IMG/VR virus record: IMGVR_UViG_3300042261_002385 | Coordinates: 372,266-436,265 of that record | Strand: one strand, 5' to 3' | DNA: 64,000 nt | Shown here: positions 1,008 to 62,377 of the stretch, piece by piece | Layout of the letters: each line of letters begins with the position of its first letter | Position numbering within the stretch: the first letter of the stretch is position 1 | Made by a program: the position numbers and the translations under genes | The notes under the pieces: model-generated | The model's database searches: none | What the model was told of the DNA's origin: nothing | Seen by the model: only the letters and a program-made list of their open reading frames with translations

Positions 1008-1061
1008 AAATCAAAAAAATGATTTTAGAAAATAATATATAAAAAAAATAATTTTACTAAA

Positions 1062-1400
1062 ATGAAACATGTTAAAACTTTTGAAGGTTTCTTTTCAAGA
1101 TTATTCGGAGGAGACAAAATCGGAGACTGTGACAAAATGACTACTAATAGAGATGGTGATGGTATTGAAGGTATGGGTACTGATTATGTAATATTTGGTG
1201 GTAGAAAATTCGAAGAAGATGATATCGTTTATGCTGATGCAAAAGACCCAAAAAACAACGGATTTGAGAATAAATCAGGTATCTTACCAAGAATTGGTTA
1301 CAGAGAGAAAGATTCAAAAAACGACGGAAAACTTATTATCCCAGGTGGTGATATGTTGAAAAAATGGTTGAAATCTAGAGGACTCGGAAGTAGAATATAA
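1062..1400 (+). CDS. Hypothetical protein with N-terminal MKHVKTFE tag
   Basis: ORF; tag; AATATATA upstream. Confidence 0.75.
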   Translation: MKHVKTFEGFFSRLFGGDKIGDCDKMTTNRDGDGIEGMGTDYVIFGGRKFEEDDIVYADAKDPKNNGFENKSGILPRIGYREKDSKNDGKLIIPGGDMLKKWLKSRGLGSRI

Positions 1401-1405
1401 CTATT

Positions 1406-1435
1406 AAAAACCACTCAATATTGAGTGGTTTTTTT
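1406..1435. terminator. Bidirectional intrinsic terminator
   Basis: aaaaaccactcaat-attgagtggttttt inverted repeat between convergent genes. Confidence 0.85.
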
Positions 1436-2129: not shown

Positions 2130-2144
2130 TTAATATATAGTTTC

Positions 2145-2729
2145 ATGAAACATTTATCAACATTTAAACTATTTGAGAGATTAGATAATTCTACATTAGT
2201 TACAATAGACCAGTTACTTGAAAGAATTAGAATTCCAAATCATATGAGACCACAAATTATTAACTGGTGGAATCAAAATAGAAGTGAAATTAGAATTCAT
2301 TTTTTTAGATTTAATACTACAGAACCAATTGGTGGAATAATTATGGATGAAAATACTATAGTTTTGAACGATGACTTACAAACAAGACCAATGCCTCCTC
2401 ATATTAAATTATTTTTGGCACTTCACGAAAGTAGACACTGCGACCAACACAGAATGGGAAATTCAATAACACAATATTTTGATTCTGTCGTAAGAAACGA
2501 TAGACAATCATTTATGAGACATTATCAAGAATTAGAAAGTGATGCTAATGACTTTGCTATTTCATCTATGAGAGCTTGTGGTTTCGACAGACAAATGAAT
2601 TTTGAAGAAAGAATGCTTAGATCAAATGAAATGGCAGGAGATATGGTTTATCAAATGATGTCAGATGACATACAGAGATTGAATCCGGTTGATTTATTTG
2701 ACTTATTTAAAAAACAAATTGGAGTGTGA
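2145..2729 (+). CDS. HExxH metallopeptidase-like protein with N-terminal tag
   Basis: Start moved to ATG 2145 (MKHLSTFKLFE) behind taatatata; LHESRHCDQH plus downstream ELESDA. Confidence 0.6.
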   Translation: MKHLSTFKLFERLDNSTLVTIDQLLERIRIPNHMRPQIINWWNQNRSEIRIHFFRFNTTEPIGGIIMDENTIVLNDDLQTRPMPPHIKLFLALHESRHCDQHRMGNSITQYFDSVVRNDRQSFMRHYQELESDANDFAISSMRACGFDRQMNFEERMLRSNEMAGDMVYQMMSDDIQRLNPVDLFDLFKKQIGV

Positions 2730-3064
2730 AACATTTAAGAAAAATTTTTGAGTCAGCAGCAGAAGAAAATGAAATCAGAGAAGTTTGTATCTGGCTTCAA
2801 GACTTAGTTGATGATATTGAGATTACAGATAATGTTAGATGTTATGATATTAATATTCGTTGTTTTAGGAAGACTAATACATCTATTGGTGAGTTAGTTA
2901 AAAATTCAGAAAGACTTCAGGAAATAACAAAAGAATATGCTGACCTTTTATTAAGATTGGAGGATTTAGGATATAAAGTTTCTTATCATTTATTAGAAAA
3001 CAAACATCACCTTAACTTTTTTAGTATGACAGGTAAAATACAGATTAATAAAAAAGACCAATAA
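2726..3064 (+). CDS. Hypothetical N-tagged protein (paralogue family)
   Basis: GTG start, MKHLRKIFES. Confidence 0.7.
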   Translation: MKHLRKIFESAAEENEIREVCIWLQDLVDDIEITDNVRCYDINIRCFRKTNTSIGELVKNSERLQEITKEYADLLLRLEDLGYKVSYHLLENKHHLNFFSMTGKIQINKKDQ

Positions 3065-3069
3065 ATTCA

Positions 3070-3432
3070 GTGAAATACTTACAAACATATAAATTATTTG
3101 AATCATCTAATATAGAACAGGTAATAAAAAATATTTTACTTCCTATAAGTGATGGTCATTTTCAGTATGAGGTAAGTGTTGAAGAATATAGTTCTATTCC
3201 TCAGCTAGTCATAAGAGTTGTTTCATGGACCGATGAACCTCTACTGATAACGGATGGGATTAAAGAGGAATTTATGGGTATGAAAAATTATTTAGAATCC
3301 GAAGGTTATAATTATATTTTAGTAAAATACTGGAGACCTAACTCGGTCTCTAGTTCCAAACCATTTGATTATTTTATAAATAATTTTGAAGGAACTATAT
3401 CAAATCTACTATTTGTTGTTAAAAAAATATGA
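3070..3432 (+). CDS. Hypothetical N-tagged protein (paralogue family)
   Basis: MKYLQTYKLFES; IKNILLPISD...YLESEGY core. Confidence 0.72.
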   Translation: MKYLQTYKLFESSNIEQVIKNILLPISDGHFQYEVSVEEYSSIPQLVIRVVSWTDEPLLITDGIKEEFMGMKNYLESEGYNYILVKYWRPNSVSSSKPFDYFINNFEGTISNLLFVVKKI

Positions 3433-4058
3433 AACACTTACAAACATATAAACTATTTGAGTCAATTGAAAGTGAAATCAATTTTGATAAAATCGTTGAA
3501 GTCCTTTCAACTGAATGCTCAGAATTTTTAGATATTTTACAACAATTTAATATTGAAGGTGTTTTCAGAGGTCATAAAATTTGGGATGAAGGAAATATAA
3601 CTAAAGGATTTTGGAAGGTAACACCTTTTGAGAAAAGACTTCCAAGAGATACTAAAGCATCTATAAGTAAATTATTAGATGAAGAATTTGAAAAGAAATT
3701 TGGAATTCCTCTAAGAAGTAAAGGAATATTTGCAAGTAAAGATATATCAATTGCAGCAGATTACGGAAGACATAAAAACGAAGCCTTTTTATTTTTCCCT
3801 AAAAACGGATTTAGATATTTTTGGAATCCGGAAGTAGATGATCTTTTTACTCTTTTAAGAGACGATACCAGTTGGTATGATAAAGAGCCTGTCTTTTGGA
3901 AAACAATGGAATGGTTAGATTTTAAACAGATTGTAGGTGGATACAGAGAAGGTGGAATTCAATATGTAAAGTATCAAGAAATAACTTTTATTTGTGATGA
4001 ATATTATCTACTTGACTTAGATTACTATGACCAATTCTTAAATTACTTTATTAAATAA
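3429..4058 (+). CDS. N-tagged protein, possible ADP-ribosyltransferase fold
   Basis: MKHLQTYKLFES; FRG, IFAS...AADYG, QEI resemble the R-S-E ART pattern. Confidence 0.45.
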   Translation: MKHLQTYKLFESIESEINFDKIVEVLSTECSEFLDILQQFNIEGVFRGHKIWDEGNITKGFWKVTPFEKRLPRDTKASISKLLDEEFEKKFGIPLRSKGIFASKDISIAADYGRHKNEAFLFFPKNGFRYFWNPEVDDLFTLLRDDTSWYDKEPVFWKTMEWLDFKQIVGGYREGGIQYVKYQEITFICDEYYLLDLDYYDQFLNYFIK

Positions 4059-4089: not shown

Positions 4090-4395
4090 ATGATAAAGTT
4101 ATTTTCATACGGAACACTTATCGAAAAAGAAGTTCAACTTCGTGAATTTGGTCAAGAATTCAAAGTGGAATCAAATTTAGATGGTGTAAAAGATTTTACA
4201 ATTGATAAAATAGAAATTGAAGGAGAATACTATTATTGTGCCATCAGTAGACCAGAATCAATAATTCTGGGTCAAATTGTCCATATACCTGAAGAATTTA
4301 TGACTTTAGTCGATGATTATGAAGGTGAAGATTATAAAAGAGTAAGTGTCAAAACACTCTCTGATGTTGAATGTTTAATGTATGTAAAAAGATGA
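4090..4395 (+). CDS. Gamma-glutamylcyclotransferase (AIG2-like) family protein
   Basis: LFSYGTL motif and DDYEGEDYKRV C-terminus. Confidence 0.8.
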   Translation: MIKLFSYGTLIEKEVQLREFGQEFKVESNLDGVKDFTIDKIEIEGEYYYCAISRPESIILGQIVHIPEEFMTLVDDYEGEDYKRVSVKTLSDVECLMYVKR

Positions 4396-4745
4396 GCACC
4401 TTCGGAAAGAAATACTTAAATTATTGGCCTTATCGTTTTGATGAAATGATAACCGGTGATAGTTGTTTAAGATGGAATAAAACCGATAAAGATTTTCAAT
4501 TAGAAATACTTAAAAAATGGTATCCTATTGGAATGCGTGGAAAAGCCATTTTAGCTGGTAAAACGACAGGAGGTAACTTGTATGAGATTACCGGATATAT
4601 TGAGCATGTGTGGGGATGGAAATTAGATATTGATTATGTTGATAGTAATTTTAGAAAAGATGTGCATCCTATCAGATTTATTCCAGAAGAAGAAGATAGA
4701 CTTAGAATTTTAAGAGAGATTAGATTGGAAAAGTTATTAGACTAA
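4371..4745 (+). CDS. Hypothetical protein with C-terminal tag (REIRLEKLLD)
   Basis: ORF; tag. Confidence 0.7.
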   Translation: MFNVCKKMSTFGKKYLNYWPYRFDEMITGDSCLRWNKTDKDFQLEILKKWYPIGMRGKAILAGKTTGGNLYEITGYIEHVWGWKLDIDYVDSNFRKDVHPIRFIPEEEDRLRILREIRLEKLLD

Positions 4746-5099
4746 TCCATCTAAGTTTTTTCTACGTCTATAAATCTTTTTCGATTTTTCCTTTTCTTTT
4801 TCTATAAATTTTTCATCACTATACATATAATTGTTATAGTAAAGTAAAGTTCCATCTTCTTTATTTTCTTTTATACAATCATCACAGATTGCAATAATAA
4901 ACTGGTCACCATCATGTTTTGATCCGTAACCAGCATCAATAATCTGAATAATACCGTTATCAACCATTTCGTTGTTGATATTTAGAGTTGATCCATTTCT
5001 TTCCTTTTTAAAATAAAGCACATCTTCTTCAGTTTCAGAAAATCCACTTCGGTAGTTTTCTGGAATGACATTATTTTTTTTACAACAAATACAGTACAT
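4737..5099 (-). CDS. Hypothetical Cys-containing protein (CICC...CDDC), weak C-terminal tag
   Basis: ORF; possible Zn ligands; ends RRRKNLDGLV. Confidence 0.65.
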   Translation of the reverse strand: MYCICCKKNNVIPENYRSGFSETEEDVLYFKKERNGSTLNINNEMVDNGIIQIIDAGYGSKHDGDQFIIAICDDCIKENKEDGTLLYYNNYMYSDEKFIEKEKEKSKKIYRRRKNLDGLV

Positions 5100-5104
5100 A
5101 TTTT

Positions 5105-5347
5105 TTATTCTATGATAAATTTATCACAAGTCTCATAGTCTTCACTTTCAATTGCATCTAAATAATCCTCACAATTTTTTTTGATATCACCAGTAAAAGG
5201 TATAATATCAGAAAACTCTTCTCTCAAATCAATAGCTCTCTTTAACTTACCATCTAAGTCATTTGGTAAAGATGATGATATTTGTATATTCTCACGTTGT
5301 TTTATAATACAATCCAAATACCTTTTTTTGATAATTATTTTTCCCAT
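5105..5347 (-). CDS. Hypothetical protein
   Basis: ORF in minus-strand operon. Confidence 0.6.
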   Translation of the reverse strand: MGKIIIKKRYLDCIIKQRENIQISSSLPNDLDGKLKRAIDLREEFSDIIPFTGDIKKNCEDYLDAIESEDYETCDKFIIE

Positions 5348-5479
5348 TTAATTAAATATTCTTTCTATTTTTTCTTTTCTAAATGACTTTCTCAAAAGAA
5401 ATCTTTTACTTAAGTTATAAACTAAAGTTGATTGATAATACACATCAACACCACCTGAAATCACATTAATCTCTTTCAT
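5348..5479 (-). CDS. 43-aa ORF with C-terminal tag (RKEKIERIFN), absent from ORF track
   Basis: Manual translation MKEINVISGG...FRKEKIERIFN*. Confidence 0.6.
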   Translation of the reverse strand: MKEINVISGGVDVYYQSTLVYNLSKRFLLRKSFRKEKIERIFN

Positions 5480-5596
5480 AAATTCTTTTAATCTTGTTTT
5501 TTCTTATAAACCTTCTAAAGTATCTGCTAGCAGCACCTCTTTTAGGATTTAACTTCTGATACATTTTTTCTACAGCCTTTTCTACCCAACTTTCAC

Positions 5597-6202
5597 TCAT
5601 TTCTCACACACCTTTCTAAAATCAGATAATATACTATTTCTTAATTCTCTAAACTCTAAGTCTAATTCATTCCAAGTCCAATCTTTAGACACTAATTTAT
5701 CCCAGATATAGTTAGCCATCTCAAAGTCATAAATGGATCCAGTAGTTGCAACCTGAGTTGCAAAAATTGGAATTCTAAGTGAATGAAAAATAGATTTTAT
5801 TCCAGTGTGATAGTCTCCTATTTCTAATTTCTTTTTGCACTTCACCCAGCTATTTGAACTTACATGAGAAGTCGCGTGTCTAAGTTTAGGAAAATCTATA
5901 TCTAAATTGTATGGGATATTTTCTTGAATCTTAGCCCAGGTTGGGGCAAAAATACACTCTAAGTTATTTATTCTATGCCACTCTAAATCTTCCTTAAACT
6001 TATCTGGAGTATAGATATGAATGTTATACTTCTCTAATTTCAACTCAATTGCTTCTACTGAATTGTTTGCTACCATTATGATATCCCAATCAGAATTTCC
6101 TGTATGAGTATTGTAAATTCTACTTCCGAAGATATAGATGTTATGCACCCGCTTTGGATGAAGTCCTGAATGAAGTATTATATCTTGTGCAGTTGGTATC
6201 AT
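5597..6202 (-). CDS. Nucleotidyltransferase (DNA pol beta superfamily)
   Basis: IYIFGSRIY...NSDWDII (hGS...DxD). Confidence 0.8.
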   Translation of the reverse strand: MIPTAQDIILHSGLHPKRVHNIYIFGSRIYNTHTGNSDWDIIMVANNSVEAIELKLEKYNIHIYTPDKFKEDLEWHRINNLECIFAPTWAKIQENIPYNLDIDFPKLRHATSHVSSNSWVKCKKKLEIGDYHTGIKSIFHSLRIPIFATQVATTGSIYDFEMANYIWDKLVSKDWTWNELDLEFRELRNSILSDFRKVCEK

Positions 6203-6209
6203 AATTTAT

Positions 6210-6217
6210 CAAATATA
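6210..6217 (-). promoter_or_regulatory. Bacteroidota -7 promoter element TATATTTG
   Basis: caaatata on + strand, just upstream of the 6202 operon. Confidence 0.6.
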
Positions 6218-6260
6218 ATAATTTAATTTAATATATACTACAATAAAAAAAGATAAGATT

Positions 6261-6662
6261 ATGAAACACTTAAAATTATTTGAAGATTATAAATATAAGG
6301 GCAACATCCGAGTTAAATTACTCGGAAACAATGATTTGTGGTATGCTAGTAATAATGAATTTGAAATATCAAATATTAAATATACCATTCTCAGTCATAA
6401 TAGTAGCAAACAAGTAATTTATGTTGCTACACTCAATAATGCTGATGATTGTCAAGAAATTCAAATCTCTACGTTGAAGTATCACTACTTTGAGGGTGAT
6501 TTAGTGATGTATTCTGAAGTAGGTTCTCATTTATGGGACAAAGAAATAGAATTATTCAAAAATTTGGGCGGTCAGTTTGGTTATTTAAACTTTTGTAAAT
6601 TAGATAGTGGAACTGAAGTTGGTAAAACAGACCATAGGAAATGGTTTGAAATAGTAGGTTAG
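6261..6662 (+). CDS. Hypothetical N-tagged protein
   Basis: MKHLKLFED; C-terminus EVGKTDHRKWFE resembles that of 8305. Confidence 0.75.
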   Translation: MKHLKLFEDYKYKGNIRVKLLGNNDLWYASNNEFEISNIKYTILSHNSSKQVIYVATLNNADDCQEIQISTLKYHYFEGDLVMYSEVGSHLWDKEIELFKNLGGQFGYLNFCKLDSGTEVGKTDHRKWFEIVG

Positions 6663-6712
6663 ATGTAGAACTGAAGTTAGTAAAACAGAGCATAGGAAAT
6701 GGTTTGAAATAG
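6610..6712 (+). repeat. Two 45-bp direct repeats (2 mismatches, 58-bp period)
   Basis: gaactgaagtt[g/a]gtaaaacaga[c/g]cataggaaatggtttgaaatag at 6610-6654 and 6668-6712. Confidence 0.9.
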
Positions 6713-6739
6713 ATATAATAAGAAAAAAAGATTAGTATC

Positions 6740-6982
6740 ATGAAACACTTAAATAAATTTAATGAAGGTTGGTTTTCTAAAGATGAAGAAAATGAACCAG
6801 TAGATGCGGTAAATAGTAAAATTGAAGATGCTGCTTATAGTTTAGGATCATTTGGTACTATGACTAAGCAAGCCGCTTTTATAAACGGTGCTAAATGGGC
6901 TATTCATAATTTAACAGATGACGAGATTAAATTACTCAGAGAGAATACTGATAAAGACGACCATAGTTTCTTTGGTTTATAA
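6740..6982 (+). CDS. Hypothetical N-tagged protein
   Basis: MKHLNKFNEG. Confidence 0.7.
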   Translation: MKHLNKFNEGWFSKDEENEPVDAVNSKIEDAAYSLGSFGTMTKQAAFINGAKWAIHNLTDDEIKLLRENTDKDDHSFFGL

Positions 6983-7017
6983 TAATTTAATTTAATATAA
7001 TAGAGAAAAATAGGATT

Positions 7018-7623
7018 ATGAAATACTTAAAATTATTTGAAGAATTCAAGATTGATTCAGAGCGAAGTTATAACATCGGGGATACTATTAGTGGTGTTCC
7101 AGGTAGCGATACATCTATAGTTGTTCGAATTGATGAAAGGGGAAAACCTATATCTGTTATGGCGAGATTGGATGTTCATCCTCTCTTTACTCAAAGAGAT
7201 ATAAAAGAACTTTATGATCTTTCTGATGCAAAGAGCATTGGTGAAATATTAAGGCTACCGGAAAATAAATTCTCAGGAAATTCCGGGTGGAGAATTCCTC
7301 TTTTGAGTGAGGTAGATATCATGAGAAAGATGTATAAAGGTCAAATAAGTCAAAATTGGAACTTTACACGACTTGAAGAGCCTCTTTATCTATATTCTAA
7401 TCATGAGTGTAGAGAATTTTGGGAAATGGATCCAAATACTCGACTAACATATCAACTAAAAAATAAAGATAAACTAGGACTTTTAGATTTTGCAGGAGGT
7501 GGATTAGATAAATTAGGAACCATCACAAAGCAGTTTAATATTAGACTTGTATATGACCTTTATAATTATAAATATTCAGATACTCTGAAAGATTTTGTTA
7601 AAACACCAAGATTTGATAGTTAA
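7018..7623 (+). CDS. N-tagged protein with DUF1566/Lcl-like WRxP motif
   Basis: MKYLKLFEEF; SGWRIPLLSEV. Confidence 0.5.
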   Translation: MKYLKLFEEFKIDSERSYNIGDTISGVPGSDTSIVVRIDERGKPISVMARLDVHPLFTQRDIKELYDLSDAKSIGEILRLPENKFSGNSGWRIPLLSEVDIMRKMYKGQISQNWNFTRLEEPLYLYSNHECREFWEMDPNTRLTYQLKNKDKLGLLDFAGGGLDKLGTITKQFNIRLVYDLYNYKYSDTLKDFVKTPRFDS

Positions 7624-7690
7624 AAAAAAGACATTTTTAAATTTTATTATTAAATTATAATATAGAGAAAAAATAGAGAAAAATAGGATT

Positions 7691-8282: not shown

Positions 8283-8304
8283 AAAATAAAAAAAAGATAA
8301 GATT

Positions 8305-8871: not shown

Positions 8872-9123
8872 TTATAATAACTGACTTAATTTTAACTCTC
8901 TAATTATAGGAGTTAGTAAAATTCTTTGGTCATCCGGGAGTCCAATTAAACAACTTTGTAGTAAAACCGTAAAGTGTGAAACCTGGACTTCATCTTCATA
9001 GATATAAGCATTTGATAATTCTCTTTCAATTTCTCTTAAGTTTGAGGCAAGTTCATACATCTGCTTGTCAATTGCAGTATGTTTAATGTCTTTAATAGCT
9101 GATATAACTAAACCTGCTTTCAT
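8872..9123 (-). CDS. Hypothetical protein with C-terminal tag (RELKLSQLL)
   Basis: ORF; tag. Confidence 0.7.
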   Translation of the reverse strand: MKAGLVISAIKDIKHTAIDKQMYELASNLREIERELSNAYIYEDEVQVSHFTVLLQSCLIGLPDDQRILLTPIIRELKLSQLL

Positions 9124-53544: not shown

Positions 53545-55995
53545 TTATCTTAATAATCTCACGCTACCCTGAAGTTCTCTTTTATCATCGTTTTTTGGAA
53601 GACCAAACTCGATAGTCCAGTTATAGATTCCATCAGGACAGATTTTATTATTATAAGTTCCATCCCATTTACCAGTAACATCAAAAGATTCCCATACCAT
53701 TTCTCCCCATCTATTATACATAGTCATATGAAACTGATAGATATCAACTCCTGAAGTAATAATTGGAGAAAAGTATTGATTGTGTTCGTCTCCGTCTGGA
53801 GTAAATGAATTTGGAATATAAATTAATTCTTGTGGACAAAGTTGAATAGTAACTGTTATATTTTGTGGATAAGATTGGCAGCCTAATTCCCAGCGAGTTG
53901 CTTGAAATAAAAACACACCTTCTTGATTCCAAGTTAAGTTAATTTGGTCTCCGATTAAGGTATCTCCAAAAGTTGACCATTCTGTATAACCTGGTTGTGA
54001 AAAAAGTGATACATAGGTATCAGTAATTGAGTCTCCTTCACATAGTTCGTGATACTCAGAATTAGTGATTTGACCATCAATTTGTATTGAGAATTGTGGA
54101 CGTGGATTTACTTCAATTTGAGATGTTTGTGTAAATTGACACCCTGATTGAATATAAGTATACGTTATGGTGTTTAGACCTGCTAATTGTGTTGTTGGAC
54201 AGAACTGAGAATTTTGAACACCAACTCCTGAGAATTGACCACCTACTGGTTGTGCAGATAATTGGACACAGTTATCATAGTCACAAAGTGGAAGAACTGG
54301 TGTGATTTGTGGAACGATATCTAAATCTACAATAGTAAATGTTTGTGGAGGTGAAAGACATCCAGTTACATCTTCTCCTATAACAGTTAAGGCATTTGGG
54401 TAAACACCACCAGCGACTCCTGTCACATCGAGTAAGATGTTTTGGGTTCCTTGACCAGAGATTGTTCCGATTGTTGAGGTCCAGTTATAGGTTAAGTTAT
54501 TAAAAAGACTTGATGTTTGATAAGGGTTATTTGAAGAGTTAACACAAACTGTATCACTTCCTATTATTGGGTTTATTATAACTTGTGGTGGATCTGTTAA
54601 GGTAACGGTTCCAGTTGCTTGGCATCCATTAGCATCGGTTACTACAACACTAAAGTTTCCTTGGCAAAGACCAGTTGCAGTTTGTCCAGTTTGATTATCA
54701 GACCAAAGATAAGTGTAGGGTGCAATACCTGCTACTGGATTTACCACGGCTTGTCCATCACAGTAACTGTAGCAAAGTGGATTAGTTCCTGTAACTGGTG
54801 GTTGTGGAAGTGCTGCTGGTTCAACAATAGTGGCCAATCCTTGATAGCTACAACCAGATGCGTCCTGGAGTGTGAAGTTATAGTTTCCAGCACAAAGACC
54901 ATTTTGTGTTAGTGAGTTTCCGACTAAACCAGGCCAACTTATAGTTATTGGAGCAGTTCCACCTATTGGAGTTACAATTATCTGACAAGTGCAATCACCA
55001 TTACAAAGTGGATTCGTTATTTGAACTCCTGGAGGTGGTAGATTCGGGGTTGGAGTCACTAAAATAGTGTCTGGTCCTAAGTTTCCAGCTCCAGCATTAC
55101 ATTGAGACCAGCCTAGATTACAAGTTGGATAAACAAATTGACAAGTGTATTGAGTTGGTCCATTTGGAGTTACCGTGATTTGAGGTCCGGTTCCGATTGG
55201 AATTGGATTTCCAACTTGAAACCAAGTTAATGTAGGTGTCACTTGTGGACCTGATGGTGTCCATCTGTAAGCGTTGTTCTGAGTTGTCCACTGAGTTGAG
55301 TTTCTACCTGGAACAGTCACGGCTGCGGATCCTAAAAGGTTATGAACACCTTGAACTGCGGTTCCGCCAGCCCATTGTGGACAGTTTGGTTTATTTTGAA
55401 TATGATTTTCGATTACGTTTGTAGATTCGTAAATTACAATATGGAAAGTTCCTAATAGGTTAGTGCAAGAAAACATAGGAACGTTTATCCAACTAACAAT
55501 TAATCTACGACATGGAGCTACGCCTTGAACTTGATAACGGACTAAACCTCCGATACCTGGATTCCAGTCTTGCCACGGTCCCATAATACAATTCTTAGGT
55601 GTTAAGGCGTTTCCTGTTGGAATTGGATTTGATGTAAAAGTTGTTGGTTGACCAGCGCTAAATGAAATCCAACCGTTTGAACCTATCCAGAATTGTGTAT
55701 ACGTGTTTCCATAGTAACAGAAAGTAAAACCAATGTTAAATGGTCCAGATTGAGAGTCATCTCCTAAAGCAACAGTAGTTCCGGCATTGGGTTGACCGAC
55801 AAATGGTATGTTAGTAACGGTATAGTTTGTGGTTTGATTTGGATTAGAACCAGGTCCACACTGAGAAAGGTCAGCTGTTAAAGTAGTTTGTGTTACTCCA
55901 CAAGGTAGAGTTACATCTGGTCCTAAATAAGGACAATATTGACCAAATGTGAATTGGGCAAAGATAAGGCTTAAAAAAATTATTAGGTTTCTCAT
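53545..55995 (-). CDS. T9SS cargo adhesin-like protein: SprB-like repeats + gliding-motility-associated (type B) C-terminal domain
   Basis: Signal peptide ...FGQ; P.C...C.G....P..G.APYTY.WSD repeats; YIPNSFTPDGD...NRWGE...WDGTY...DGIY.W. Confidence 0.88.
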   Translation of the reverse strand: MRNLIIFLSLIFAQFTFGQYCPYLGPDVTLPCGVTQTTLTADLSQCGPGSNPNQTTNYTVTNIPFVGQPNAGTTVALGDDSQSGPFNIGFTFCYYGNTYTQFWIGSNGWISFSAGQPTTFTSNPIPTGNALTPKNCIMGPWQDWNPGIGGLVRYQVQGVAPCRRLIVSWINVPMFSCTNLLGTFHIVIYESTNVIENHIQNKPNCPQWAGGTAVQGVHNLLGSAAVTVPGRNSTQWTTQNNAYRWTPSGPQVTPTLTWFQVGNPIPIGTGPQITVTPNGPTQYTCQFVYPTCNLGWSQCNAGAGNLGPDTILVTPTPNLPPPGVQITNPLCNGDCTCQIIVTPIGGTAPITISWPGLVGNSLTQNGLCAGNYNFTLQDASGCSYQGLATIVEPAALPQPPVTGTNPLCYSYCDGQAVVNPVAGIAPYTYLWSDNQTGQTATGLCQGNFSVVVTDANGCQATGTVTLTDPPQVIINPIIGSDTVCVNSSNNPYQTSSLFNNLTYNWTSTIGTISGQGTQNILLDVTGVAGGVYPNALTVIGEDVTGCLSPPQTFTIVDLDIVPQITPVLPLCDYDNCVQLSAQPVGGQFSGVGVQNSQFCPTTQLAGLNTITYTYIQSGCQFTQTSQIEVNPRPQFSIQIDGQITNSEYHELCEGDSITDTYVSLFSQPGYTEWSTFGDTLIGDQINLTWNQEGVFLFQATRWELGCQSYPQNITVTIQLCPQELIYIPNSFTPDGDEHNQYFSPIITSGVDIYQFHMTMYNRWGEMVWESFDVTGKWDGTYNNKICPDGIYNWTIEFGLPKNDDKRELQGSVRLLR

Positions 55996-56928: not shown

Positions 56929-57507
56929 TCAAAAAGGTGAAAGTTTATGACGTGAGGGGTTTAAATTTTTACCACTTCCTGCTACAGCGGACAAGCATTT
57001 CCAACATATCGCAGCTGCGAAAGTAATAATAGCTCCGGCTAAAACACCAATACCTAATCCAGTTCCTAATAAAGCAAGTAAAGTAACGATGGCTCCTCCA
57101 ATAGTGATTGCTGCTGAACTTAACCAACCTATCATTTTCAAGAATTCAACTGCACTCATACCTAAAATTTCTTCAGTAATTAACGTATAGTTTTCTTTTA
57201 ATACCGGTTGTAATTTTTTCTCGTCAGTTGGTGGAACATAATTTTTTAATTTTTCATAACAATCTTTTATGTCTTCTATACCAACTTTTTCGGATACTAT
57301 TTTACAAGCAGCATTGAATTTATCGGCATATTTCTCCATTACCTCTTTAGCCTTCTCCATACCTTCGCGGTAAGATCCTGTTAGTTTATCCCAGAGGTTT
57401 TTAAGACTATTTTTTAGTGAGTCCCACCACTCACCCAATCTGCTAAATAATCCTTCTTCTTCATTAATGGAATAAGAAAAACTTTCGAATGATTTGACGT
57501 ATTTCAT
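56929..57507 (-). CDS. N-tagged protein with C-terminal hydrophobic hairpin
   Basis: MKYVKSFESF; two Gly/Ala-rich TM-like helices near C-terminus. Confidence 0.7.
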   Translation of the reverse strand: MKYVKSFESFSYSINEEEGLFSRLGEWWDSLKNSLKNLWDKLTGSYREGMEKAKEVMEKYADKFNAACKIVSEKVGIEDIKDCYEKLKNYVPPTDEKKLQPVLKENYTLITEEILGMSAVEFLKMIGWLSSAAITIGGAIVTLLALLGTGLGIGVLAGAIITFAAAICWKCLSAVAGSGKNLNPSRHKLSPF

Positions 57508-57901
57508 TTTATTTAATATTTTTTTTATATATTAAGTGACAAAAATGTTTTTTTTACCGATTTTTCAACTGTTTTTTTTTGTTTGACTTAATTAATGTAT
57601 AGTCTAATGAGGATATATCTTAAACTCTACTCACGGTGATAAAAAGAAAAATGATAGAACCAGAATTCAAAGAATCGGTGATTACTTTCGAATCGGTGAG
57701 ATTTTAGACTAATCTTCAGTCCAGTTTTCGGGGTCTATCAAATCACCTTCATCAATCAAATCCATTTTTATATAGATAAACACTTGATTGTGTTCTTTAA
57801 TGAATTTTAGTTCATCGTAGTAGTTGAATTCTTTTTCTGCACGTTTTTTCCAATAATCATAAACGCCATCAAAGTCTTTGTTAAAAGAAGTTGCTTTTAC
57901 T

Positions 57902-58159
57902 TTACCAATTTTTTTGAGTCTTAGTTCCATTTATCAGCTGTTCTATTTTATAGTCTCTTTTATTTATTATTTTTTCATTTAATACATTTTCTAAAACTAA
58001 TTCTAGGTCAGCTGCAAGTGAGTCTATTTTTATTGTGAAGATTTCACCATCAAATGTATCTTTTAAGGTATATGATGGTAGAAATGTGGTTGAGTGGTAA
58101 GATATAGGTAGATGATTTTGGAATCTACCACTAAATTTTTTAAGTAATTTATCAATCAT
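57902..58159 (-). CDS. Hypothetical protein with near-terminal tag (RDYKIEQLING)
   Basis: ORF; tag. Confidence 0.65.
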   Translation of the reverse strand: MIDKLLKKFSGRFQNHLPISYHSTTFLPSYTLKDTFDGEIFTIKIDSLAADLELVLENVLNEKIINKRDYKIEQLINGTKTQKNW

Positions 58160-58170
58160 TTAATCTGATA

Positions 58171-58389
58171 TTAATTAAGTAGTTTATTTAATAGTTGTTC
58201 TCTATGAGATCTAAGATTTCTCCTATAAGAGTCTAAAATTATTACTTCAATTTCTTTTTCTGTGATGAGAAAACCATGATGCATATCTTGTATTATTTCA
58301 GGTGACAGGTCAAGTTTTACTCCTTTGTAATATGCTTGAGTAAGACCATCTGGTTCTTTAATCCATTTTATCTCGTCTTTCTCTATCAT
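58171..58389 (-). CDS. Hypothetical protein with C-terminal tag (REQLLNKLLN)
   Basis: ORF; tag. Confidence 0.65.
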   Translation of the reverse strand: MIEKDEIKWIKEPDGLTQAYYKGVKLDLSPEIIQDMHHGFLITEKEIEVIILDSYRRNLRSHREQLLNKLLN

Positions 58390-58582
58390 TTAGTATTTGT
58401 TCTAATTGTTTATCTCTTATTTGATCTAATTCTTTTTTATAGTAGAACATAATAATAGATTCTGCTTTCATATCTGTTTGAATGACATAGTCTTGAACAT
58501 TTTGACGAGTGACTTTAAGTTTTATATCGTCATAGAAAACTTCTTCGCCTTTAAATATTAGGAGTTCTTTGTTAAATTTCAT
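58358..58582 (-). CDS. Hypothetical protein with near-terminal tag (RDKQLEQILND)
   Basis: ORF; tag. Confidence 0.65.
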   Translation of the reverse strand: MKFNKELLIFKGEEVFYDDIKLKVTRQNVQDYVIQTDMKAESIIMFYYKKELDQIRDKQLEQILNDRERRDKMD

Positions 58583-58991
58583 ACTTTTTATATATTTTGC
58601 TCATTTTTTGTTGTTAAATTTTGTTTCTAAATTTTAACATAATCATATAAAACCGTTGATAATAAAGGGTTTCATAAAAAATAGCTATTTTTGAATTATA
58701 TATACAAAATGATTAGAAGGATTATATCGTGGTATAAAATCTGGATATTAAAAAGAGAAATAAAGTCAATTCAAGTAGAAATTGATGAGTATTATCTTAC
58801 GCTATTAGCCCGTAATGATGAATTTCATAAGGTCATAGACATAGACAAACACTTTCAGAGAGTTGTTAAACTAAGAGACGTTGAAAGACGTGAGTTAGAA
58901 AGACAGATTGAATCTCTTAAAAGGTAGTTAAAACTTCTCTTTTTAATTAAGTAATCAATTTCACTTAAATTGTTTACCCTAAATTTGTGCC

Positions 58992-60641
58992 TTAAATTTT
59001 AGTTACGAGATTTTCTACAATTTGGAGACCTCTTATTATTTTTGAATAATAATCATTTACTCTCCAATTTCTCAAATATTGACAAGCTCTTTCACCAGTA
59101 TCTTGACCTAAATAATCTATGAAATTTGATAAATTATCTAAACCGTAAGTGCTATTAGAAAAGAAGTTTGATAGACTTATCATTTTTTGACGAGCTATTT
59201 CTAAATCTTCTATGGTATTAAATTCACCAGACATTAGTCTTGTATAGAACTTTTGACTTATTCTTTCTAAACTTTCAACAATTGGTAAATATTTGTTTTC
59301 AGTTTCTTCACTGTCGGATTTTAGAATTTTTTTAACAGTTTCTAAATTTTTAGTGATTCTAGTAGTTCTTTCAGCTGCTCTTTTGTAAAGGTCTTTGATT
59401 CTATTATTAATTTGATTAATGCAGTATTCTTTATTACTTTCGTCTTCAGTAGACATCATATCATAATAAAGTTCTGATATTGATCCAAAATAGTTTTGAT
59501 ATCTTGAAGCTGATTCTAAGACAAACATTGACCATCTACCACCAACTCCTCTAGATACTAAATTTTTGATATTAGACACATCGCCTATGATGTCAGCTTT
59601 AAGTGCAATTTGAGTAAGATATCTTTCAATATTTTGTTTTCTAACATCATCATCACTAACTACTAATCTGCTGCCAGATTTAAGTTCTTCTCTTTCATCT
59701 TTTATTTCACTTCTACGTTGATACTCACCCGACTTTAATTTATTTAAGTCTAACACTAAGGCAAAATGAGCATCTTTTATAGTAGATTCTACATTTGTTC
59801 CAGTATATGATTTAAAGTATTGGTTTAGTCCAACATTCCACTCGTAAGGATCTACGGCATCTTTATCATCATCATCATCACCTTCTTCTTTTTCTTTAAG
59901 AACACAAATTCTGTTAAAATCTCCACCAGATACATTCCAAGAGTATCTTCCATAACTTCTCCAAGCACTACCATTTGGTGATCCACCGTCGAACCTGTCT
60001 TGAATACAGAATACTTCTCCACCACTTTGAAAAATCGTTGCAATTACATCTGGATCTCTATCATGTGCTGCAATTGTAACTTTTGTCAAGTGTGGTAGAC
60101 TACGGAGAGTTCTTACTCCATTTGAATCAGGTAACAGGGTAGATACTACTTTATATTTTTGCAAAGATTTTGATTTAGATGCTACGCTTCTAAGAACTCC
60201 ATCAACTCCAGTTTGTGTGATGAATTTACCATCTGATGAAAACCAGAATTTAATTATTTTTACCTCTGGTTGTTGTGGTTCTTTTCCAGATCCATCACAA
60301 TGGGGACAATCAACGATTCTAGTTCTTTGACCCCACATACGTGCTAATTTACCTGATTTACAAACCTCACCTTCAACACCGTGTTGTCTGAATGCGGTTT
60401 TAGAAGTCATTTTACAAGGTTCATCTTTAGGTTCAAATTTAACATTTAGTGCCTTTTTGAAAGGTAAGTATTCAAACATATCATCTGAAAACTGAGATAG
60501 TGGAAAATCGTAACTGCGAGCTAATTTTTCGAGTGTATTAATGAATCTTTGTTTAGATTCAGAATTTATATATCCTAAAATTTTAGTTAATTTAACTGAT
60601 TCAAATGCTTCGAAAAGTTTGAGATATTTTAATTGTCTCAT
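58992..60641 (-). CDS. Large N-tagged hypothetical protein
   Basis: MRQLKYLKLFEAFE; CPHCDGSG Zn motif; helical C-half. Confidence 0.75.
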   Translation of the reverse strand: MRQLKYLKLFEAFESVKLTKILGYINSESKQRFINTLEKLARSYDFPLSQFSDDMFEYLPFKKALNVKFEPKDEPCKMTSKTAFRQHGVEGEVCKSGKLARMWGQRTRIVDCPHCDGSGKEPQQPEVKIIKFWFSSDGKFITQTGVDGVLRSVASKSKSLQKYKVVSTLLPDSNGVRTLRSLPHLTKVTIAAHDRDPDVIATIFQSGGEVFCIQDRFDGGSPNGSAWRSYGRYSWNVSGGDFNRICVLKEKEEGDDDDDKDAVDPYEWNVGLNQYFKSYTGTNVESTIKDAHFALVLDLNKLKSGEYQRRSEIKDEREELKSGSRLVVSDDDVRKQNIERYLTQIALKADIIGDVSNIKNLVSRGVGGRWSMFVLESASRYQNYFGSISELYYDMMSTEDESNKEYCINQINNRIKDLYKRAAERTTRITKNLETVKKILKSDSEETENKYLPIVESLERISQKFYTRLMSGEFNTIEDLEIARQKMISLSNFFSNSTYGLDNLSNFIDYLGQDTGERACQYLRNWRVNDYYSKIIRGLQIVENLVTKI

Positions 60642-62302
60642 ATTTGTGGACCTACGATTTCTACTTTTATTCCGCTTCTTCTTAGTTCGGATACATATTC
60701 TTTAGTTTGCTTGTCAACTATAAGGTCACCAGAAATTACTAATTTTTTTACTTTTAAGTTACTGAAACCTTCTTTCATATCAGCTAATGTATCTAATGTA
60801 TAAAGTATTTGTAATTCTTCCAATTCAGTGAATATAGAAAGATCAATATCTCCTGTCATATCACAACTTAATATCTGAAGTTTCTTAATATTTGGATTTA
60901 CTGAAACAATTTCTTCGAATATCTTAGAGTCAAATTTACATTTATCAAATGCGATAGAGTCTGTTTTTACGTTGCTAAATCCTGACAATGTTTTTATTTT
61001 CAATGATTTGAATTTAATCCATTCTAAGTCAAGTGGAATTTGAGTCAAATTCTCTGGAATATCTGTAGTCTCAATTACTAGTTGTTTGATTTTTGCTTTT
61101 GGTGATATTTTTATCTTACTCCAGTCATAAACTGCACTTAAGTAAAGTGATTTAGTATTTTTTCCAATAAACTGAGCTTGGTCAAGTCTCATTCTATCCA
61201 TATAAGGAGCTCTAATTGAATCTTCAGGATCAATATCCGGTGTGAATAAATATCTAGAAGAACTTGGGCTTGTGTTTTCAACGTTGCTTGAATATTTTGT
61301 TACAAGCTCGTCAAATATATCTTTCATCCTATCTGGATAAGCTCTGTCAAAGTAAATCTTTGCTTCACTTTGGTCATCAAATGATTCGATATTTCTAATC
61401 ATCATTCTTGAAAGTGGTAGTTTATCTGATATTTTTTCATCATTCCAGAAAATCGGAGTATCAAATACAAAGAAAGCTGGAATTGAATTCGGATCGAAAA
61501 CGTTTCCTAATAGTTGTTCTCTGTAGCCACCTGTGTATAAATGTTGACAAGAACTATAGAATTTTGAAATAGACATGTTCAAAATATCACTCGGATTGTG
61601 GTCAATCTGAAGATATATATCTCTTCCAAAGATTGCATATTCATATCTGTAGTCACTGTTGTGATTTTCTTTAGCTAAATTTCTTAATTGACTAATATCT
61701 CTTGATGAGAAAATAGTTGTAGAGACTCTATCATCTGGATAACATCTATTGTAGTCATCAACAAAGCTATTGATATTAATTAAGTTCGTTGAGAAAACAG
61801 GATCACCTGCATTCTTTTTAACACGAATCATATTTCCTTCTTCATCTCTAATTGGTCTACCATTCTCATCTTTTTGAATTCTTTCTGAAGCTTGAGTTTC
61901 TCTAATTTCTAATTTTCTAAATACCGGCTCATAGATAAAAACTATTTGATCTACAGTTGGTGCTTGGATATTAAAATTATCCATAACCATTTTACTAGCA
62001 TCGGTTAGAAGCTCTAAATTTATAGACTCTTGAAGAACATGATTGAATTTATCTGGAATACTTGTAAATGAATTCATAATATTTTCCATATTACAATCAA
62101 AAAAATAAGATAAAACTTTAAGTTTATCTTCTTCTTCAAGTTTCCATCTACCTTGTTTAATCTTATCGGTCGGATCTACTTCTTCATAATCTAAGTATTT
62201 CTCACCCCATTGTTGAGCAACAGCTTTTGCTTGTTTTGGTAAGATAATATCTTTGATTCTGGCTTCGTTTAACCATTGTTCTCTAGTTTTAATCCACTTC
62301 AT
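60638..62302 (-). CDS. Large N-tagged protein with LRR-like C-terminus
   Basis: MKWIKTREQWLNE; MS....SSCQ motif; L..L.I repeats at C-terminus. Confidence 0.7.
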   Translation of the reverse strand: MKWIKTREQWLNEARIKDIILPKQAKAVAQQWGEKYLDYEEVDPTDKIKQGRWKLEEEDKLKVLSYFFDCNMENIMNSFTSIPDKFNHVLQESINLELLTDASKMVMDNFNIQAPTVDQIVFIYEPVFRKLEIRETQASERIQKDENGRPIRDEEGNMIRVKKNAGDPVFSTNLININSFVDDYNRCYPDDRVSTTIFSSRDISQLRNLAKENHNSDYRYEYAIFGRDIYLQIDHNPSDILNMSISKFYSSCQHLYTGGYREQLLGNVFDPNSIPAFFVFDTPIFWNDEKISDKLPLSRMMIRNIESFDDQSEAKIYFDRAYPDRMKDIFDELVTKYSSNVENTSPSSSRYLFTPDIDPEDSIRAPYMDRMRLDQAQFIGKNTKSLYLSAVYDWSKIKISPKAKIKQLVIETTDIPENLTQIPLDLEWIKFKSLKIKTLSGFSNVKTDSIAFDKCKFDSKIFEEIVSVNPNIKKLQILSCDMTGDIDLSIFTELEELQILYTLDTLADMKEGFSNLKVKKLVISGDLIVDKQTKEYVSELRRSGIKVEIVGPQI

Positions 62303-62377
62303 AAACTATATATTAAAATATTTTGTTTATTTTTTGATTTAGATAAAAACTTTAGTATCTTTGTCTATAACATAAAT

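Follow-up and report, generated by a model that had tools for sequence, protein, structure and literature searches.

The 64-kb window analyzed here (64,000 nucleotides, positions 372,266 to 436,265 of IMG/VR record IMGVR_UViG_3300042261_002385) is the last 64 kb of the genome of a 436-kb T4-like huge phage of Bacteroidota from freshwater. It encodes many genes carrying one of two short terminal peptide tags, an N-tag (MK[HY][LI]K.[FY]E.F) or a C-tag ([IL]R[DE].K[LI]..[LI][GIL].), together with two kinds of putative promoter motif, AATATATA and the host-type TTTG-N19-TAnnTTTG. The features, in window coordinates, were as follows.

148-1007, + strand: endolysin (PG_binding_1 + Glyco_hydro_19; gene 177-1007), with the variant TTATATATA ending 21 nt before the start.
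1034-1400, + strand: AATATATA (1034-1041), 20 nt before N-tag gene 1062-1400 (MKHVKTFEGF; N-tag score 22.7).
1434-2129, - strand: C-tag gene with no recognizable promoter; only 15 nt separate it from the divergent N-tag operon. The same holds for 8872-9123 (-), 34663-35007 (+), 50376-50600 (-), and 50615-50827 (+).
2132-4058, + strand: AATATATA (2132-2139), 5 nt before an operon of four N-tag genes (2145-2729, 2726-3064, 3070-3432, and 3429-4058).
4371-4745, + strand: C-tag gene (LREIRLEKLLD) trailing the N-tag operon on the same strand, with no clear promoter of its own, so that its assignment is ambiguous.
4737-6217, - strand: TATATTTG (6210-6217), 7 nt before a five-gene operon whose first gene is a nucleotidyltransferase and which includes C-tag variants 5466-5600 and 5348-5479 (K-I-x-R-I-[FY] form).
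6230-8856, + strand: AATATATA (6230-6237), 23 nt before five N-tag genes (6261-6662, 6740-6982, 7018-7623, 7691-8050, and 8305-8856).
10125-12037, - strand: TATATTTG (12030-12037), 7 nt before a seven-gene operon with five C-tag genes (11435-11563, 10924-11445, 10682-10927, 10427-10648, and 10125-10430).
12049-12585, + strand: AATATATA (12049-12056), 4 nt before GTG-start N-tag gene 12061-12585.
13545-16893, + strand: ClpP/ABC-transporter operon whose last gene, 16465-16893, carries a C-tag (WRDNQLNQIID).
19906-20562, + strand: TATATTTG (19906-19913) before 19951-20151, 20144-20350, and C-tag gene 20347-20562.
24132-24755, + strand: TTTG-N19-TATATTTG (24132-24162), just after a bidirectional terminator hairpin (24104-24127), preceding 24179-24457 and C-tag gene 24558-24755.
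24760-26351, + strand: AATATATA (24760-24767), 4 nt before 24772-25329, whose N-tag-like start is below threshold; C-tag genes 25816-26130 and 26127-26351 follow with no promoter motif of their own, an exception or an unresolved case.
27333-29566, - strand: AATATATA (29559-29566), 17 nt before 28438-29541 and 28103-28438, then N-tag gene 27333-28106, which is glutamate-racemase-like with the tag as an N-terminal extension.
32070-33086, - strand: LamG-domain protein 32070-33074 with AATATATA (33079-33086) 4 nt upstream; a second LamG gene, 36679-38016, has AATATATA at 36664-36671.
39783-41948, + strand: AATATATA at 39783-39790 (78 nt upstream) and at 40696-40703, before five N-tag genes (39869-40288, 40285-40704, 40708-41187, 41203-41679, and 41676-41948), the last a Pterin_4a enzyme.
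42312-43190, - strand: untagged RpoD-like phage sigma factor (regions 1.2, 2, 3, and 4), with TAATTTTG (43183-43190) 46 nt upstream.
43217-43485, + strand: AATATATA (43217-43224), 24 nt before N-tag gene 43249-43485.
43759-46776, + strand: TTTG-N19-TAAATTTG (43759-43789) before an eight-gene operon with five C-tag genes (44643-44906, 44903-45106, 45437-45916, 45941-46288, and 46459-46776).
46779-47531, + strand: TTTG-N19-TATCTTTG (46779-46809), followed by an untagged methyltransferase (46944-47531).
47539-48812, + strand: TTTG-N20-TATATTTG (47539-47570), 4 nt before 47575-47733, in an operon that includes C-tag genes 47970-48338 and 48343-48627.
51332-52248, + strand: AATATATA (51332-51339), 7 nt before N-tag genes 51347-51736 and 51733-52248.
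56929-57533, - strand: AATATATA (57526-57533), 18 nt before N-tag gene 56929-57507.
57709-58596, - strand: AATATATA (58589-58596), 6 nt before a cluster with C-tag gene 58171-58389 and two genes (58358-58582 and 57902-58159) whose C-tag-like motif sits 8-9 residues from the end.
58992-62314, - strand: AATATATA (62307-62314), 4 nt before 60638-62302 and 58992-60641, whose N-tag-like starts are below threshold (7.4 and 6.4 bits).

To determine how far the tags extend beyond the window, we called 536 genes in the whole 436-kb genome and scored them with position-specific matrices. The N-tag matrix at 10 bits or more identified 63 called genes, compared with 6 of 6685 decoy starts, and the C-tag matrix at 10 bits or more in the last 18 residues identified 42 genes, with only 26 internal hits in 121,009 positions. 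No gene carried both tags (0 observed, 4.9 expected, P 0.004). The same exclusion was found in 16 related loci (0 observed, 6.1 expected, P 0.001) and in 250 kb of the published 642-kb phage LR756502.1, where 89 N-tag and 108 C-tag genes were counted (0 observed, 21.5 expected, P 8e-13). The one borderline ORF, 41676-41948, ends in its Pterin_4a domain and not in a C-tag. Both tags were conserved at the protein level, not at the DNA level.

The motif AATATATA was the strongest upstream 8-mer, lying upstream of 135 genes compared with 5.5 expected, and with 18.7 +/- 4.6 in composition-matched shuffles. Of its 169 copies, 139 were located within 60 nt upstream of a same-strand start, and single-base variants lost this placement, except for TATATATA. 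TAnnTTTG was found upstream of 67 genes, compared with 18.3 +/- 4.3 in the shuffles, so that about 18 of the 67 are expected by chance; when TTTG was required 17-21 nt further upstream, the count was 15 compared with 0.3. No site of the AATATATA family lay closer than 4 nt to a start, and 37 lay at exactly 4 nt; TAnnTTTG peaked at the same 4-nt gap (12 sites, with 3 closer), and relatives showed the same pattern. In F. johnsoniae, transcripts start 4-5 nt after the -7 element (PMC6847099). Canonical TTGACA/TATAAT sites occurred only at chance level.

When genes were assigned to transcription units, which were defined heuristically, N-tag genes of this genome split 57 AATATATA-type to 3 host-type, whereas C-tag genes split 10 to 23, with 9 in neither class for lack of a motif (Fisher P 4e-11). 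Counted by unit, N-only units split 37:1 and C-only units 7:12 (P 8e-7), and shuffling promoter labels among units gave P below 5e-5 for the N-tag and 6e-4 for the C-tag. The sorting was cleaner in the 16 related loci (N-tag 37:0, C-tag 2:67) and was repeated in LR756502.1 (N-tag 83:3, C-tag 18:34). In this genome, 10 of 42 C-tag genes, about a quarter, lay in AATATATA units, and about a fifth had no recognizable promoter; in LR756502.1, 18 of 108 C-tag genes lay in AATATATA units.

These results confirm the observation of the initial annotation that the two tags are mutually exclusive and follow two promoter classes, and all positions given in it were recovered, although several details required correction. 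The gap between AATATATA and the start codon, given as about 10-30 nt, is bimodal (4-7 nt or 15-27 nt). The motif, presented as a mark of N-tagged units and of the endolysin, holin, and LamG genes, is not specific to N-tag genes: it sits directly upstream of about 25% of all genes, and its family heads 154 of 266 transcription units. The endolysin has the variant TTATATATA, and the starts at 24772 (under 5 bits) and 60638 (7.4 bits), listed as N-tagged, fall below our threshold. The promoter at 46802, listed with C-tagged clusters, is followed by the untagged methyltransferase. Finally, the cluster at 57902-58582 is not the only C-tag exception: within the window, 18 C-tag genes lie in host-type units, 4 in AATATATA units, and 5 in units with no motif.

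The gene content of the two classes fits a host-type early class and a later AATATATA class. DNA ligase, clamp loader, both polymerase B halves, helicase, thymidylate synthase, and the ECF-like and RpoD-like sigmas were found in host-type or motif-less units, whereas the gp23-like capsid protein, the head maturation (prohead) protease, the large terminase, a sheath-like protein, the endolysin, and the LamG proteins were found in AATATATA-type units. However, AATATATA also precedes both ribonucleotide reductase subunits, a primase-like gene, and a RecA-like gene, which are early or middle functions in T4, so this class is better described as phage-sigma dependent, middle plus late, than as purely late. 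A search for transcript or start-site data for this phage found none, and the timing is therefore inferred. The proposal of the initial annotation that early proteins receive the C-label and late, packaged proteins the N-label is thus supported only in part: the sorting by promoter class is strongly supported, but packaging rests only on analogy with the T4 capsid-targeting sequence.

We consider a two-stage, T4-like transcription program, with two unrelated terminal tags partitioned between the stages, to be the probable explanation. In this view, unmodified host RNA polymerase with the Bacteroidota primary sigma would first read the TTTG-N19/20-TAnnTTTG promoters, which head units of mostly small genes, many ending in the C-tag, as well as replication genes and at least one of the two complete phage sigma-70-family genes (the other has a host-type element 46 nt upstream). 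A phage sigma would then redirect the host core enzyme to a single strict 8-bp element, ttt[A/T]ATATATA, which has no upstream partner element and occupies the same position as the host -7 element. Transcripts would begin about 5 nt after it, giving either leaderless mRNAs or short A-rich leaders, and this class would drive head, tail, packaging, and lysis genes, some nucleotide-metabolism genes, and nearly all N-tag genes. The best candidate is the gp55-like late sigma at genome positions 256599-256964, with the RpoD-like sigma of the window as the alternative. A 121-aa ORF matched the PHROG 'late sigma transcription factor' (E 4e-7) and T4 gp55 (25% identity, E 4e-4), and no RNA polymerase subunit genes were found in the genome. 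However, the gp55-like gene itself has AATATATA about 53 nt upstream, and something else must therefore start its expression. The motifs, their positions, the tags, their mutual exclusion and association, and the conservation of all these in relatives are established by the sequence analysis, whereas the timing, which sigma reads which promoter, packaging, and cleavage are inferences. On this reading, sequence alone sorts many genes of unknown function into two putative expression classes.

The N-tag is most likely a capsid-targeting propeptide of the T4 internal-protein kind, and it would probably be cut after its Glu by the prohead protease of the phage. Such proteins have to be made while proheads assemble, which would explain why the tag is tied to the late class. 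The most conserved hydrophobic positions were 4 (L/I/V in 62 of 63) and 7 (F/Y in 61 of 63), and every copy had its first Glu at positions 5-13. In T4, residues 4 and 7 of the 10-residue targeting sequence direct packaging, and the protease cuts after L/I-x-E (PMC9026906). The tagged bodies were unrelated (60 BLASTP families for 63 genes), as T4 internal proteins likewise share only the targeting sequence (PMC3012670), and the head module is T4-type. On the other hand, 63 or more packaged proteins per genome is far beyond any known capsid-targeting repertoire, and some N-tag bodies are ordinary metabolic enzymes (Pterin_4a, a glutamate-racemase-like protein, a glutamine amidotransferase, and a cyanophycin-synthase-like domain). 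The C-tag is a protein-level C-terminal motif on otherwise unrelated, small proteins, mostly of the inferred early class.

Among the alternatives, a three-tier cascade is possible but less likely. Here, the early-made RpoD-like or ECF-like sigma would read AATATATA as a middle class comprising ribonucleotide reductase, primase, the N-tag genes, and the gp55-like gene, and the gp55-like sigma would then read a later subclass such as TATATATA, making N-tag proteins middle rather than late. The position of AATATATA before the gp55-like gene and the ribonucleotide reductase, primase, and RecA-like genes fits this view, as do the two complete sigma genes that lie in, or behind, host-type promoters. 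In addition, TATATATA differs from the T4 late promoter TATAAATA at one base and precedes the capsid protein, a sheath-like protein, the endolysin, and proteins of 3055, 1826, and 1332 aa. However, both variants share the same flanks and the same bimodal spacing, and terminase, prohead protease, and many very large proteins use AATATATA itself. It is unlikely that the association reflects genome architecture alone, with AATATATA and the N-tag codons traveling as a short cassette that captures new genes, C-tag genes accumulating in long early operons of a hyperplastic end region, and no link of the tags to timing. In favor of this view, 32 of 63 N-tag genes have their own AATATATA-family site, 30 of 42 C-tag genes and 25 of 63 N-tag genes lie in the last 76 kb of the genome, and the unrelated tagged bodies are as expected for captured genes. 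Nevertheless, half of the N-tag genes are internal to operons without a promoter of their own, tag codons vary freely, so that no DNA cassette is conserved, and the exclusion and sorting persist across phages whose capsid proteins share only 70% identity, which argues for selection.

It appears doubtful that AATATATA is an RNA-level signal, either a translation-initiation enhancer or a processing site, in a host that lacks Shine-Dalgarno sequences. The fixed distance of 4-7 nt from many start codons and the reliance of Bacteroidota on A/U-rich initiation regions (PMC6847099) would fit, but there is a second mode at 15-27 nt, the motif occurs at unit heads, in divergent intergenic regions, and just after terminator hairpins, it is absent before most operon-internal genes, and its geometry matches that of the host -7 element. 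Least likely is an early promoter read by a virion-packaged phage RNA polymerase, as with the AT-rich early promoters of phiKZ and AR9, which would reverse the proposed timing. AR9 early promoters are AAATATATATTAT-N6-G, with the start site 6 nt downstream of the element (PMC5312081). However, no beta, beta-prime, or T7-type RNA polymerase domains were detectable in this genome, which has the make-up of group 2 jumbo phages (gp23-type capsid protein, family B polymerase, and sigma factors), a group reported to lack its own RNA polymerase (PMC7824862), and the motif precedes capsid, terminase, protease, and lysis genes.

Compared with the T4 program of host sigma-70 early promoters followed by gp55-dependent late promoters, the later class here likewise has a single, strictly conserved 8-bp AT-rich element at the -10 position without a -35 partner and precedes head, tail, packaging, and lysis genes, and a gp55-like sigma, a gp44-like clamp loader, a gp23-like capsid protein, and a gp21-like protease are present. 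The element is, however, [A/T]ATATATA, and TATAAATA itself was barely enriched (23 of 106 copies within 60 nt of a start). Early promoters are of the Bacteroidota -33/-7 type, two additional complete sigma-70-family genes are present, the later class includes ribonucleotide reductase, primase, and a RecA-like gene, many genes appear to be leaderless, and no gp45 clamp was found in searches of the genome. The N-tag resembles the targeting sequence of the T4 internal proteins (IPI-III and Alt), removed by prohead protease gp21, in being a roughly 10-residue N-terminal tag starting with MK, but it occurs on 63 genes here and on at least 89 in 250 kb of LR756502.1, against a handful in T-even phages. 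As in the Bacteroidota primary-sigma promoter (TTTG at -33, TAnnTTTG at -7; PMC6847099), the two middle bases of the enriched -7 element are almost never G, TTTG lies 19-20 nt upstream at the best sites, and the usual minimum gap to a start codon is 4 nt; however, these promoters are used by a phage, and many sit directly against the start codon, whereas most F. johnsoniae mRNAs have leaders longer than 10 nt (PMC6847099).

Group 2 jumbo phages and the Mahaphage clade of huge phages are among the closest known systems: shared features are the gp23-type capsid protein, family B polymerase, phage sigma factors of both the minimal and the RpoD-like kind, and the absence of RNA polymerase (PMC7824862), and the nearest capsid proteins belong to the 634-735 kb lake phages and the Lak phages (PMC7162821). 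Neither tag, the AATATATA promoter, nor their sorting turned up in term searches of the main text of those two papers, and Lak-B5 has none of them in the 50 kb sampled. The C-tag recalls C-terminal docking or degradation motifs, namely the T4 clamp-binding tails (SLDFLFG and SLDFLY) and ClpX recognition tags, in lying at the extreme C-terminus of unrelated proteins. Its hydrophobic spacing, L-x-x-L-hydrophobic, matches the T4 tails, and one copy reads KLEYLFG. However, an invariant Arg and a near-invariant Lys lie upstream, the polymerase, ligase, and gp55-like protein of the phage do not end in the C-tag, and ClpP is conserved in relatives that lack the C-tag.

The 436,265-bp virus record, of which the window forms the last 64 kb, has a G+C content of 31% and carries a T4-type head module, in which a gp23-family capsid protein (PF07068, E 4e-28) lies next to a head maturation protease of the gp21 type (phrog_207, E 1e-30; a weak Peptidase_S77 match, PF03420, E 5e-4). 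The genome also encodes a large terminase, a split family B polymerase, a gp44-like clamp loader, an NAD ligase, a helicase, a thymidylate synthase, ribonucleotide reductase, a Toprim primase, and a RecA-like protein. Searches for RNA polymerase subunits detected none in the genome, and scans of the window for tRNA and Rfam families were empty. A protein with a type IX secretion C-terminal domain and the promoter type both point to a Bacteroidota host. The closest capsid proteins were those of the 634-735 kb lake phages, LR756502.1 at 70% identity and LR756501.1 at 51%, followed by those of the Lak phages at 30%. This is the Mahaphage clade (PMC7162821), and the gene set is that of group 2 jumbo phages (PMC7824862). 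At the DNA level, no close cultured relative was found in the phage collection, and a search for relatives through the 495-aa protein returned none. Searches of public sequencing runs showed that the phage's DNA is present in many freshwater metagenomes, whereas no RNA run holding it was listed. Three sigma-like proteins were identified:
window 42312-43136 (-), an RpoD-like sigma
genome 82057-82656 (-), an ECF-like sigma
genome 256599-256964 (+), a 121-aa gp55-like late sigma

The gp55-like ORF, outside the window, matched phrog_234 (E 3.9e-7) and T4 gp55 (E 4e-4, 25% identity), although a whole-genome search with T4 gp55 as query had missed it. It lacks the C-terminal third of T4 gp55, which carries the clamp-binding tail, and AATATATA lies about 53 nt upstream of it.

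We called 536 genes with a codon model and built position-specific score matrices for both tags. The N-tag, M-[KR]-[YH]-[LIV]-[KR]-x-[FY]-[EK]-x-[FY], scored 10 bits or more in 63 called genes, compared to 6 of 6685 other start codons. The C-tag, [IL]-R-[DE]-x-K-[LI]-x-x-[LI]-[GFIL]-x, located 0-5 residues from the stop codon, scored 10 bits or more in 42 genes; internal matches numbered 26 in 121,009 positions, compared to 39 in about 4,250 terminal positions. Both tags are conserved at the protein level. Codons at conserved positions varied synonymously and conservatively (for example, TTA, ATT, CTA, CTT, and GTA at N-tag position 4, and AGA, AGG, and CGN for the invariant Arg of the C-tag), and 17 of 42 C-tag genes had no closely following same-strand gene, so that a translation operator or recombination site conserved at the DNA level was rejected. 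The best N-tag DNA pattern tried fitted only 7 of 63 copies. Recent paralogy was also rejected as the source of the tags, since after trimming the tags the 63 N-tag proteins fell into 60 BLASTP families and all 42 C-tag proteins were singletons. The tagged bodies mostly had no Pfam match, but where a domain was present, as in the Pterin_4a protein and a glutamate-racemase-like protein, the N-tag was an N-terminal add-on. One untagged 325-aa protein driven by AATATATA (window 9156-10133, +) ends in ...KRWIRTFESFRNKLR, an N-tag-like sequence placed at the C terminus.

No gene carried both tags. In this genome, 0 genes were observed against 4.9 expected (P 0.004); in 16 related loci comprising 508 genes, 0 against 6.1 (P 0.001); and in 250 kb of the 642-kb LR756502.1, with 89 N-tag and 108 C-tag genes among 448, 0 against 21.5 (P 8e-13). 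The single borderline ORF, at window 41676-41948, ends in its Pterin_4a domain.

The element AATATATA was by far the most enriched 8-mer upstream of genes, being found upstream of 135 genes against 5.5 expected from genome frequency and 18.7 +/- 4.6 in composition-matched shuffles. Of its 169 copies on both strands, 139 lay within 60 nt upstream of a same-strand start. Single-base variants lost this placement, except for TATATATA, which added 30 genes with the same flanks and spacing. The site logo showed information only in the 8-mer and the T-rich bases just before it, consistent with a single AT-rich element in the -10 region without a -35 element, as in T4-type late promoters. The T4 late consensus itself, TATAAATA, did not fit, as only 23 of its 106 copies lay within 60 nt of a start. 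The host-type element TAnnTTTG was also enriched on the sense strand, with 67 genes against 18.3 +/- 4.3 in shuffles and 35 on the antisense strand. When paired with TTTG 17-21 nt further upstream, the count was 15 genes against 0.3 expected. The distance in the Bacteroidota primary-sigma promoter is about 19-20 nt; the window sites at 24132, 43759, and 46779 have N19, and that at 47539 has N20. Canonical TTGACA/TATAAT promoters occurred only at chance level.

The gap between AATATATA-family sites and the start codon was bimodal: no site lay at 0-3 nt, 37 lay at 4 nt and 20 at 5 nt, and a second mode lay at 15-27 nt with an A-rich leader. TAnnTTTG peaked at the same 4-nt gap (12 sites, with only 3 at 0-3 nt), and this geometry was repeated in relatives. 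In F. johnsoniae, the start site lies 4-5 nt after the -7 element (PMC6847099). Both elements therefore appear to sit at the same promoter position, and about 70 genes, including several with GTG starts, would be translated from leaderless or near-leaderless mRNAs (window examples 12049-12063, 40696-40710, and 47563-47577), whereas most mRNAs of F. johnsoniae, a member of the likely host phylum, have leaders longer than 10 nt. Perfect bidirectional terminator hairpins (A-run, stem, T-run) lie between units at window 1406-1433 and 24104-24127, and similar hairpins directly precede many AATATATA sites across the genome.

When separately examining the motif directly upstream of each gene, a AATATATA-family site was found at 32 of 63 N-tag genes, 2 of 42 C-tag genes, and 131 of the 431 untagged genes. 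Walking up to the head of the transcription unit, the N-tag genes split into 57 AATATATA-type, 3 host-type, 2 with both, and 1 with none; the C-tag genes into 10, 23, 0, and 9; and the untagged genes into 247, 100, 17, and 67, respectively. Fisher's test on N-tag against C-tag genes gave P 4e-11. By unit, N-only units were 37:1 and C-only units 7:12, with 8 having no motif (P 8e-7), and shuffling promoter labels among units gave P below 5e-5 for the N-tag and 6e-4 for the C-tag. In the 16 related loci, 37 N-tag genes were AATATATA-type and 0 host-type, compared to 2 and 67 for the C-tag genes. In LR756502.1, the N-tag genes were 83 and 3, and the C-tag genes 18 and 34, with 14 having none and 37 cut by locus ends. 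In related locus L023, whose sigma is 77% identical, a twelve-gene operon, most of whose genes end in a C-tag or a C-tag-like motif, is headed by TATATTTG, and beside it are N-tag genes, most with their own AATATATA. LR756501.1 has the motif but almost no tags in the 150 kb sampled, and Lak-B5 has neither in the 50 kb sampled. More distant relatives, found through ClpP, lack AATATATA and the C-tag, and nearly all lack the N-tag too; two of them keep N-tag-like starts without the motif.

All of the coordinates in the initial annotation were found, and its observation that the tags exclude one another and sort with two promoter classes held. The exception that it named, the C-tag cluster at 57709-58596, is real but is not the only one. 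Its interpretation, that early proteins receive the C-tag and late, packaged proteins the N-tag, was partly supported. The motifs, the tags, their mutual exclusion, and their sorting by promoter class were read from the sequence itself, whereas the timing, the transcription start 4-5 nt after the elements, recognition by host sigma A or by a phage sigma, and the packaging and removal of the N-tag are inferences. In the inferred scheme, host-type promoters must work at time zero. The ECF-like sigma gene lies in a host-type unit, the RpoD-like sigma gene has a host-type element 46 nt upstream, and DNA ligase, the clamp loader, and one polymerase B half lie in host-type units, while the other polymerase B half, the helicase, and thymidylate synthase have no motif. 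AATATATA-family sites head the capsid protein, prohead protease, terminase, a sheath-like protein, the endolysin, and LamG proteins, but also ribonucleotide reductase, primase, and the RecA-like gene, so the class is better described as phage-dependent, middle plus late. Within the family, the TATATATA variant precedes the capsid protein, the sheath-like protein, the endolysin, and proteins of 3055, 1826, and 1332 aa, whereas AATATATA precedes terminase, prohead protease, ribonucleotide reductase, and most N-tag genes. According to its annotation, the T4 late promoter is likewise a lone 8-mer read by gp55, with the clamp taking the place of a -35 element, and this promoter type depends on gp33 and the gp45 sliding clamp. 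A gp55-like gene is present here, but two Pfam models and a search with T4 gp45 detected no gp45, and because the gp55-like gene itself has AATATATA upstream, a three-tier cascade cannot be excluded.

In T4, diverse internal proteins share only a capsid-targeting propeptide of 10-19 residues, in which residues 4 and 7 target the protein to the scaffolding core, and which is cut after L/I-x-E by gp21 (PMC9026906, PMC3012670). The two best-conserved hydrophobic residues of the N-tag are at exactly these positions, with L/I/V at position 4 in 62 of 63 copies and F/Y at position 7 in 61 of 63. The tag also has a Glu at positions 8-11, the first Glu being at position 8 in 32 copies, 9 in 9, and 11 in 14, but the residue three before it varies (K, L, S, T), and the specificity of this protease is unknown. 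Since the tag sits on unrelated bodies, occurs in a phage with a T4-type head and protease, and by promoter class would be expressed with the head genes, a targeting propeptide is the best reading, inferred by analogy; the number of tagged genes and the metabolic-enzyme bodies are reasons for caution.

For the C-tag, no function can be assigned. It resembles T4 clamp-binding tails (SLDFLF type) in position and hydrophobic spacing. However, the C-terminal half of the polymerase ends in ...DIFSGFGKGGF and the gp55-like protein in ...GQGLHSI, both with C-tag scores below 0, and no clamp gene was found. A ClpP-linked degron is possible but unsupported; ClpP is also conserved in relatives that have no C-tag, which neither supports nor excludes the idea. 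The phage ClpP (E 4e-54) sits in one operon (window 13545-16893) with a secreted-looking small protein, an ABC transporter, and a C-tag protein, and is conserved at 58-71% identity in 80 related viral contigs of up to 483 kb.

Together, the tags mark 20% of the genes in this genome and about 44% of the genes in the sampled parts of LR756502.1. A more far-reaching possibility, which we hold only tentatively, is that they form a protein-sorting code wired to the transcription program: the capsid-targeting-like N-tag would send dozens to hundreds of late proteins into the prohead, and the C-terminal motif R-x-x-K-[LI]-x-x-[LI]-[GFIL] would give a comparably large set of early proteins one common fate, either docking on a single hub or timed removal. 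Temporal promoter classes, phage sigmas, and capsid-targeting tags are all known. What is new is the AATATATA element, the scale of N-tagging, the C-tag, which appears to be undescribed, the strict exclusion of the two tags, and their sorting by promoter class across a clade that includes published huge-phage genomes; term searches of the main text of the two most relevant papers and our literature searches turned up no description of these. Huge phages of the Mahaphage clade consist mostly of genes of unknown function, and two promoter motifs and two 10-residue tags assign a large share of these, from sequence alone, to an expression class and possibly to a cellular fate. If the N-tag is a capsid-targeting signal, these phages would package or inject far more kinds of protein than any studied phage. 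The strict AATATATA element and the leaderless layout are testable features in the Flavobacterium jumbophages recently brought into culture, if they carry these motifs, and the promoters and tags could serve as tools for expression or for loading cargo into capsids in Bacteroidota phage systems.

Of the 42 C-tag genes, 30, and of the 63 N-tag genes, 25, lie in the last 76 kb of the record (360-436 kb, the window plus 12 kb before it), an end region packed with small genes that resembles the hyperplastic regions of T4. The window also contains the following features:
12589-13464 (-), a GIY-YIG homing-endonuclease-like gene with its own AATATATA (13480-13487), wedged between an N-tag gene and the ClpP operon
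44468-44642 and 46289-46458, two intergenic gaps of about 170 nt inside the long C-tag operon, which look G+C-richer than their surroundings and may be structured, without tRNA or Rfam match
53545-55995 (-), an 816-aa protein with SprB and PKD repeats and a type IX secretion C-terminal domain, driven by AATATATA, which looks like a host-derived Bacteroidota surface protein

Among the ClpP relatives, loci L080 and L089 (36-38% G+C) showed N-tag-like starts, for example MKHILLFESF and MKRIKLFEDF, in the absence of AATATATA, suggesting that the N-tag may be older than this promoter motif. ATATTTAT and TATTTATA were enriched upstream of genes across the pooled related loci and may be a promoter of the more distant relatives.
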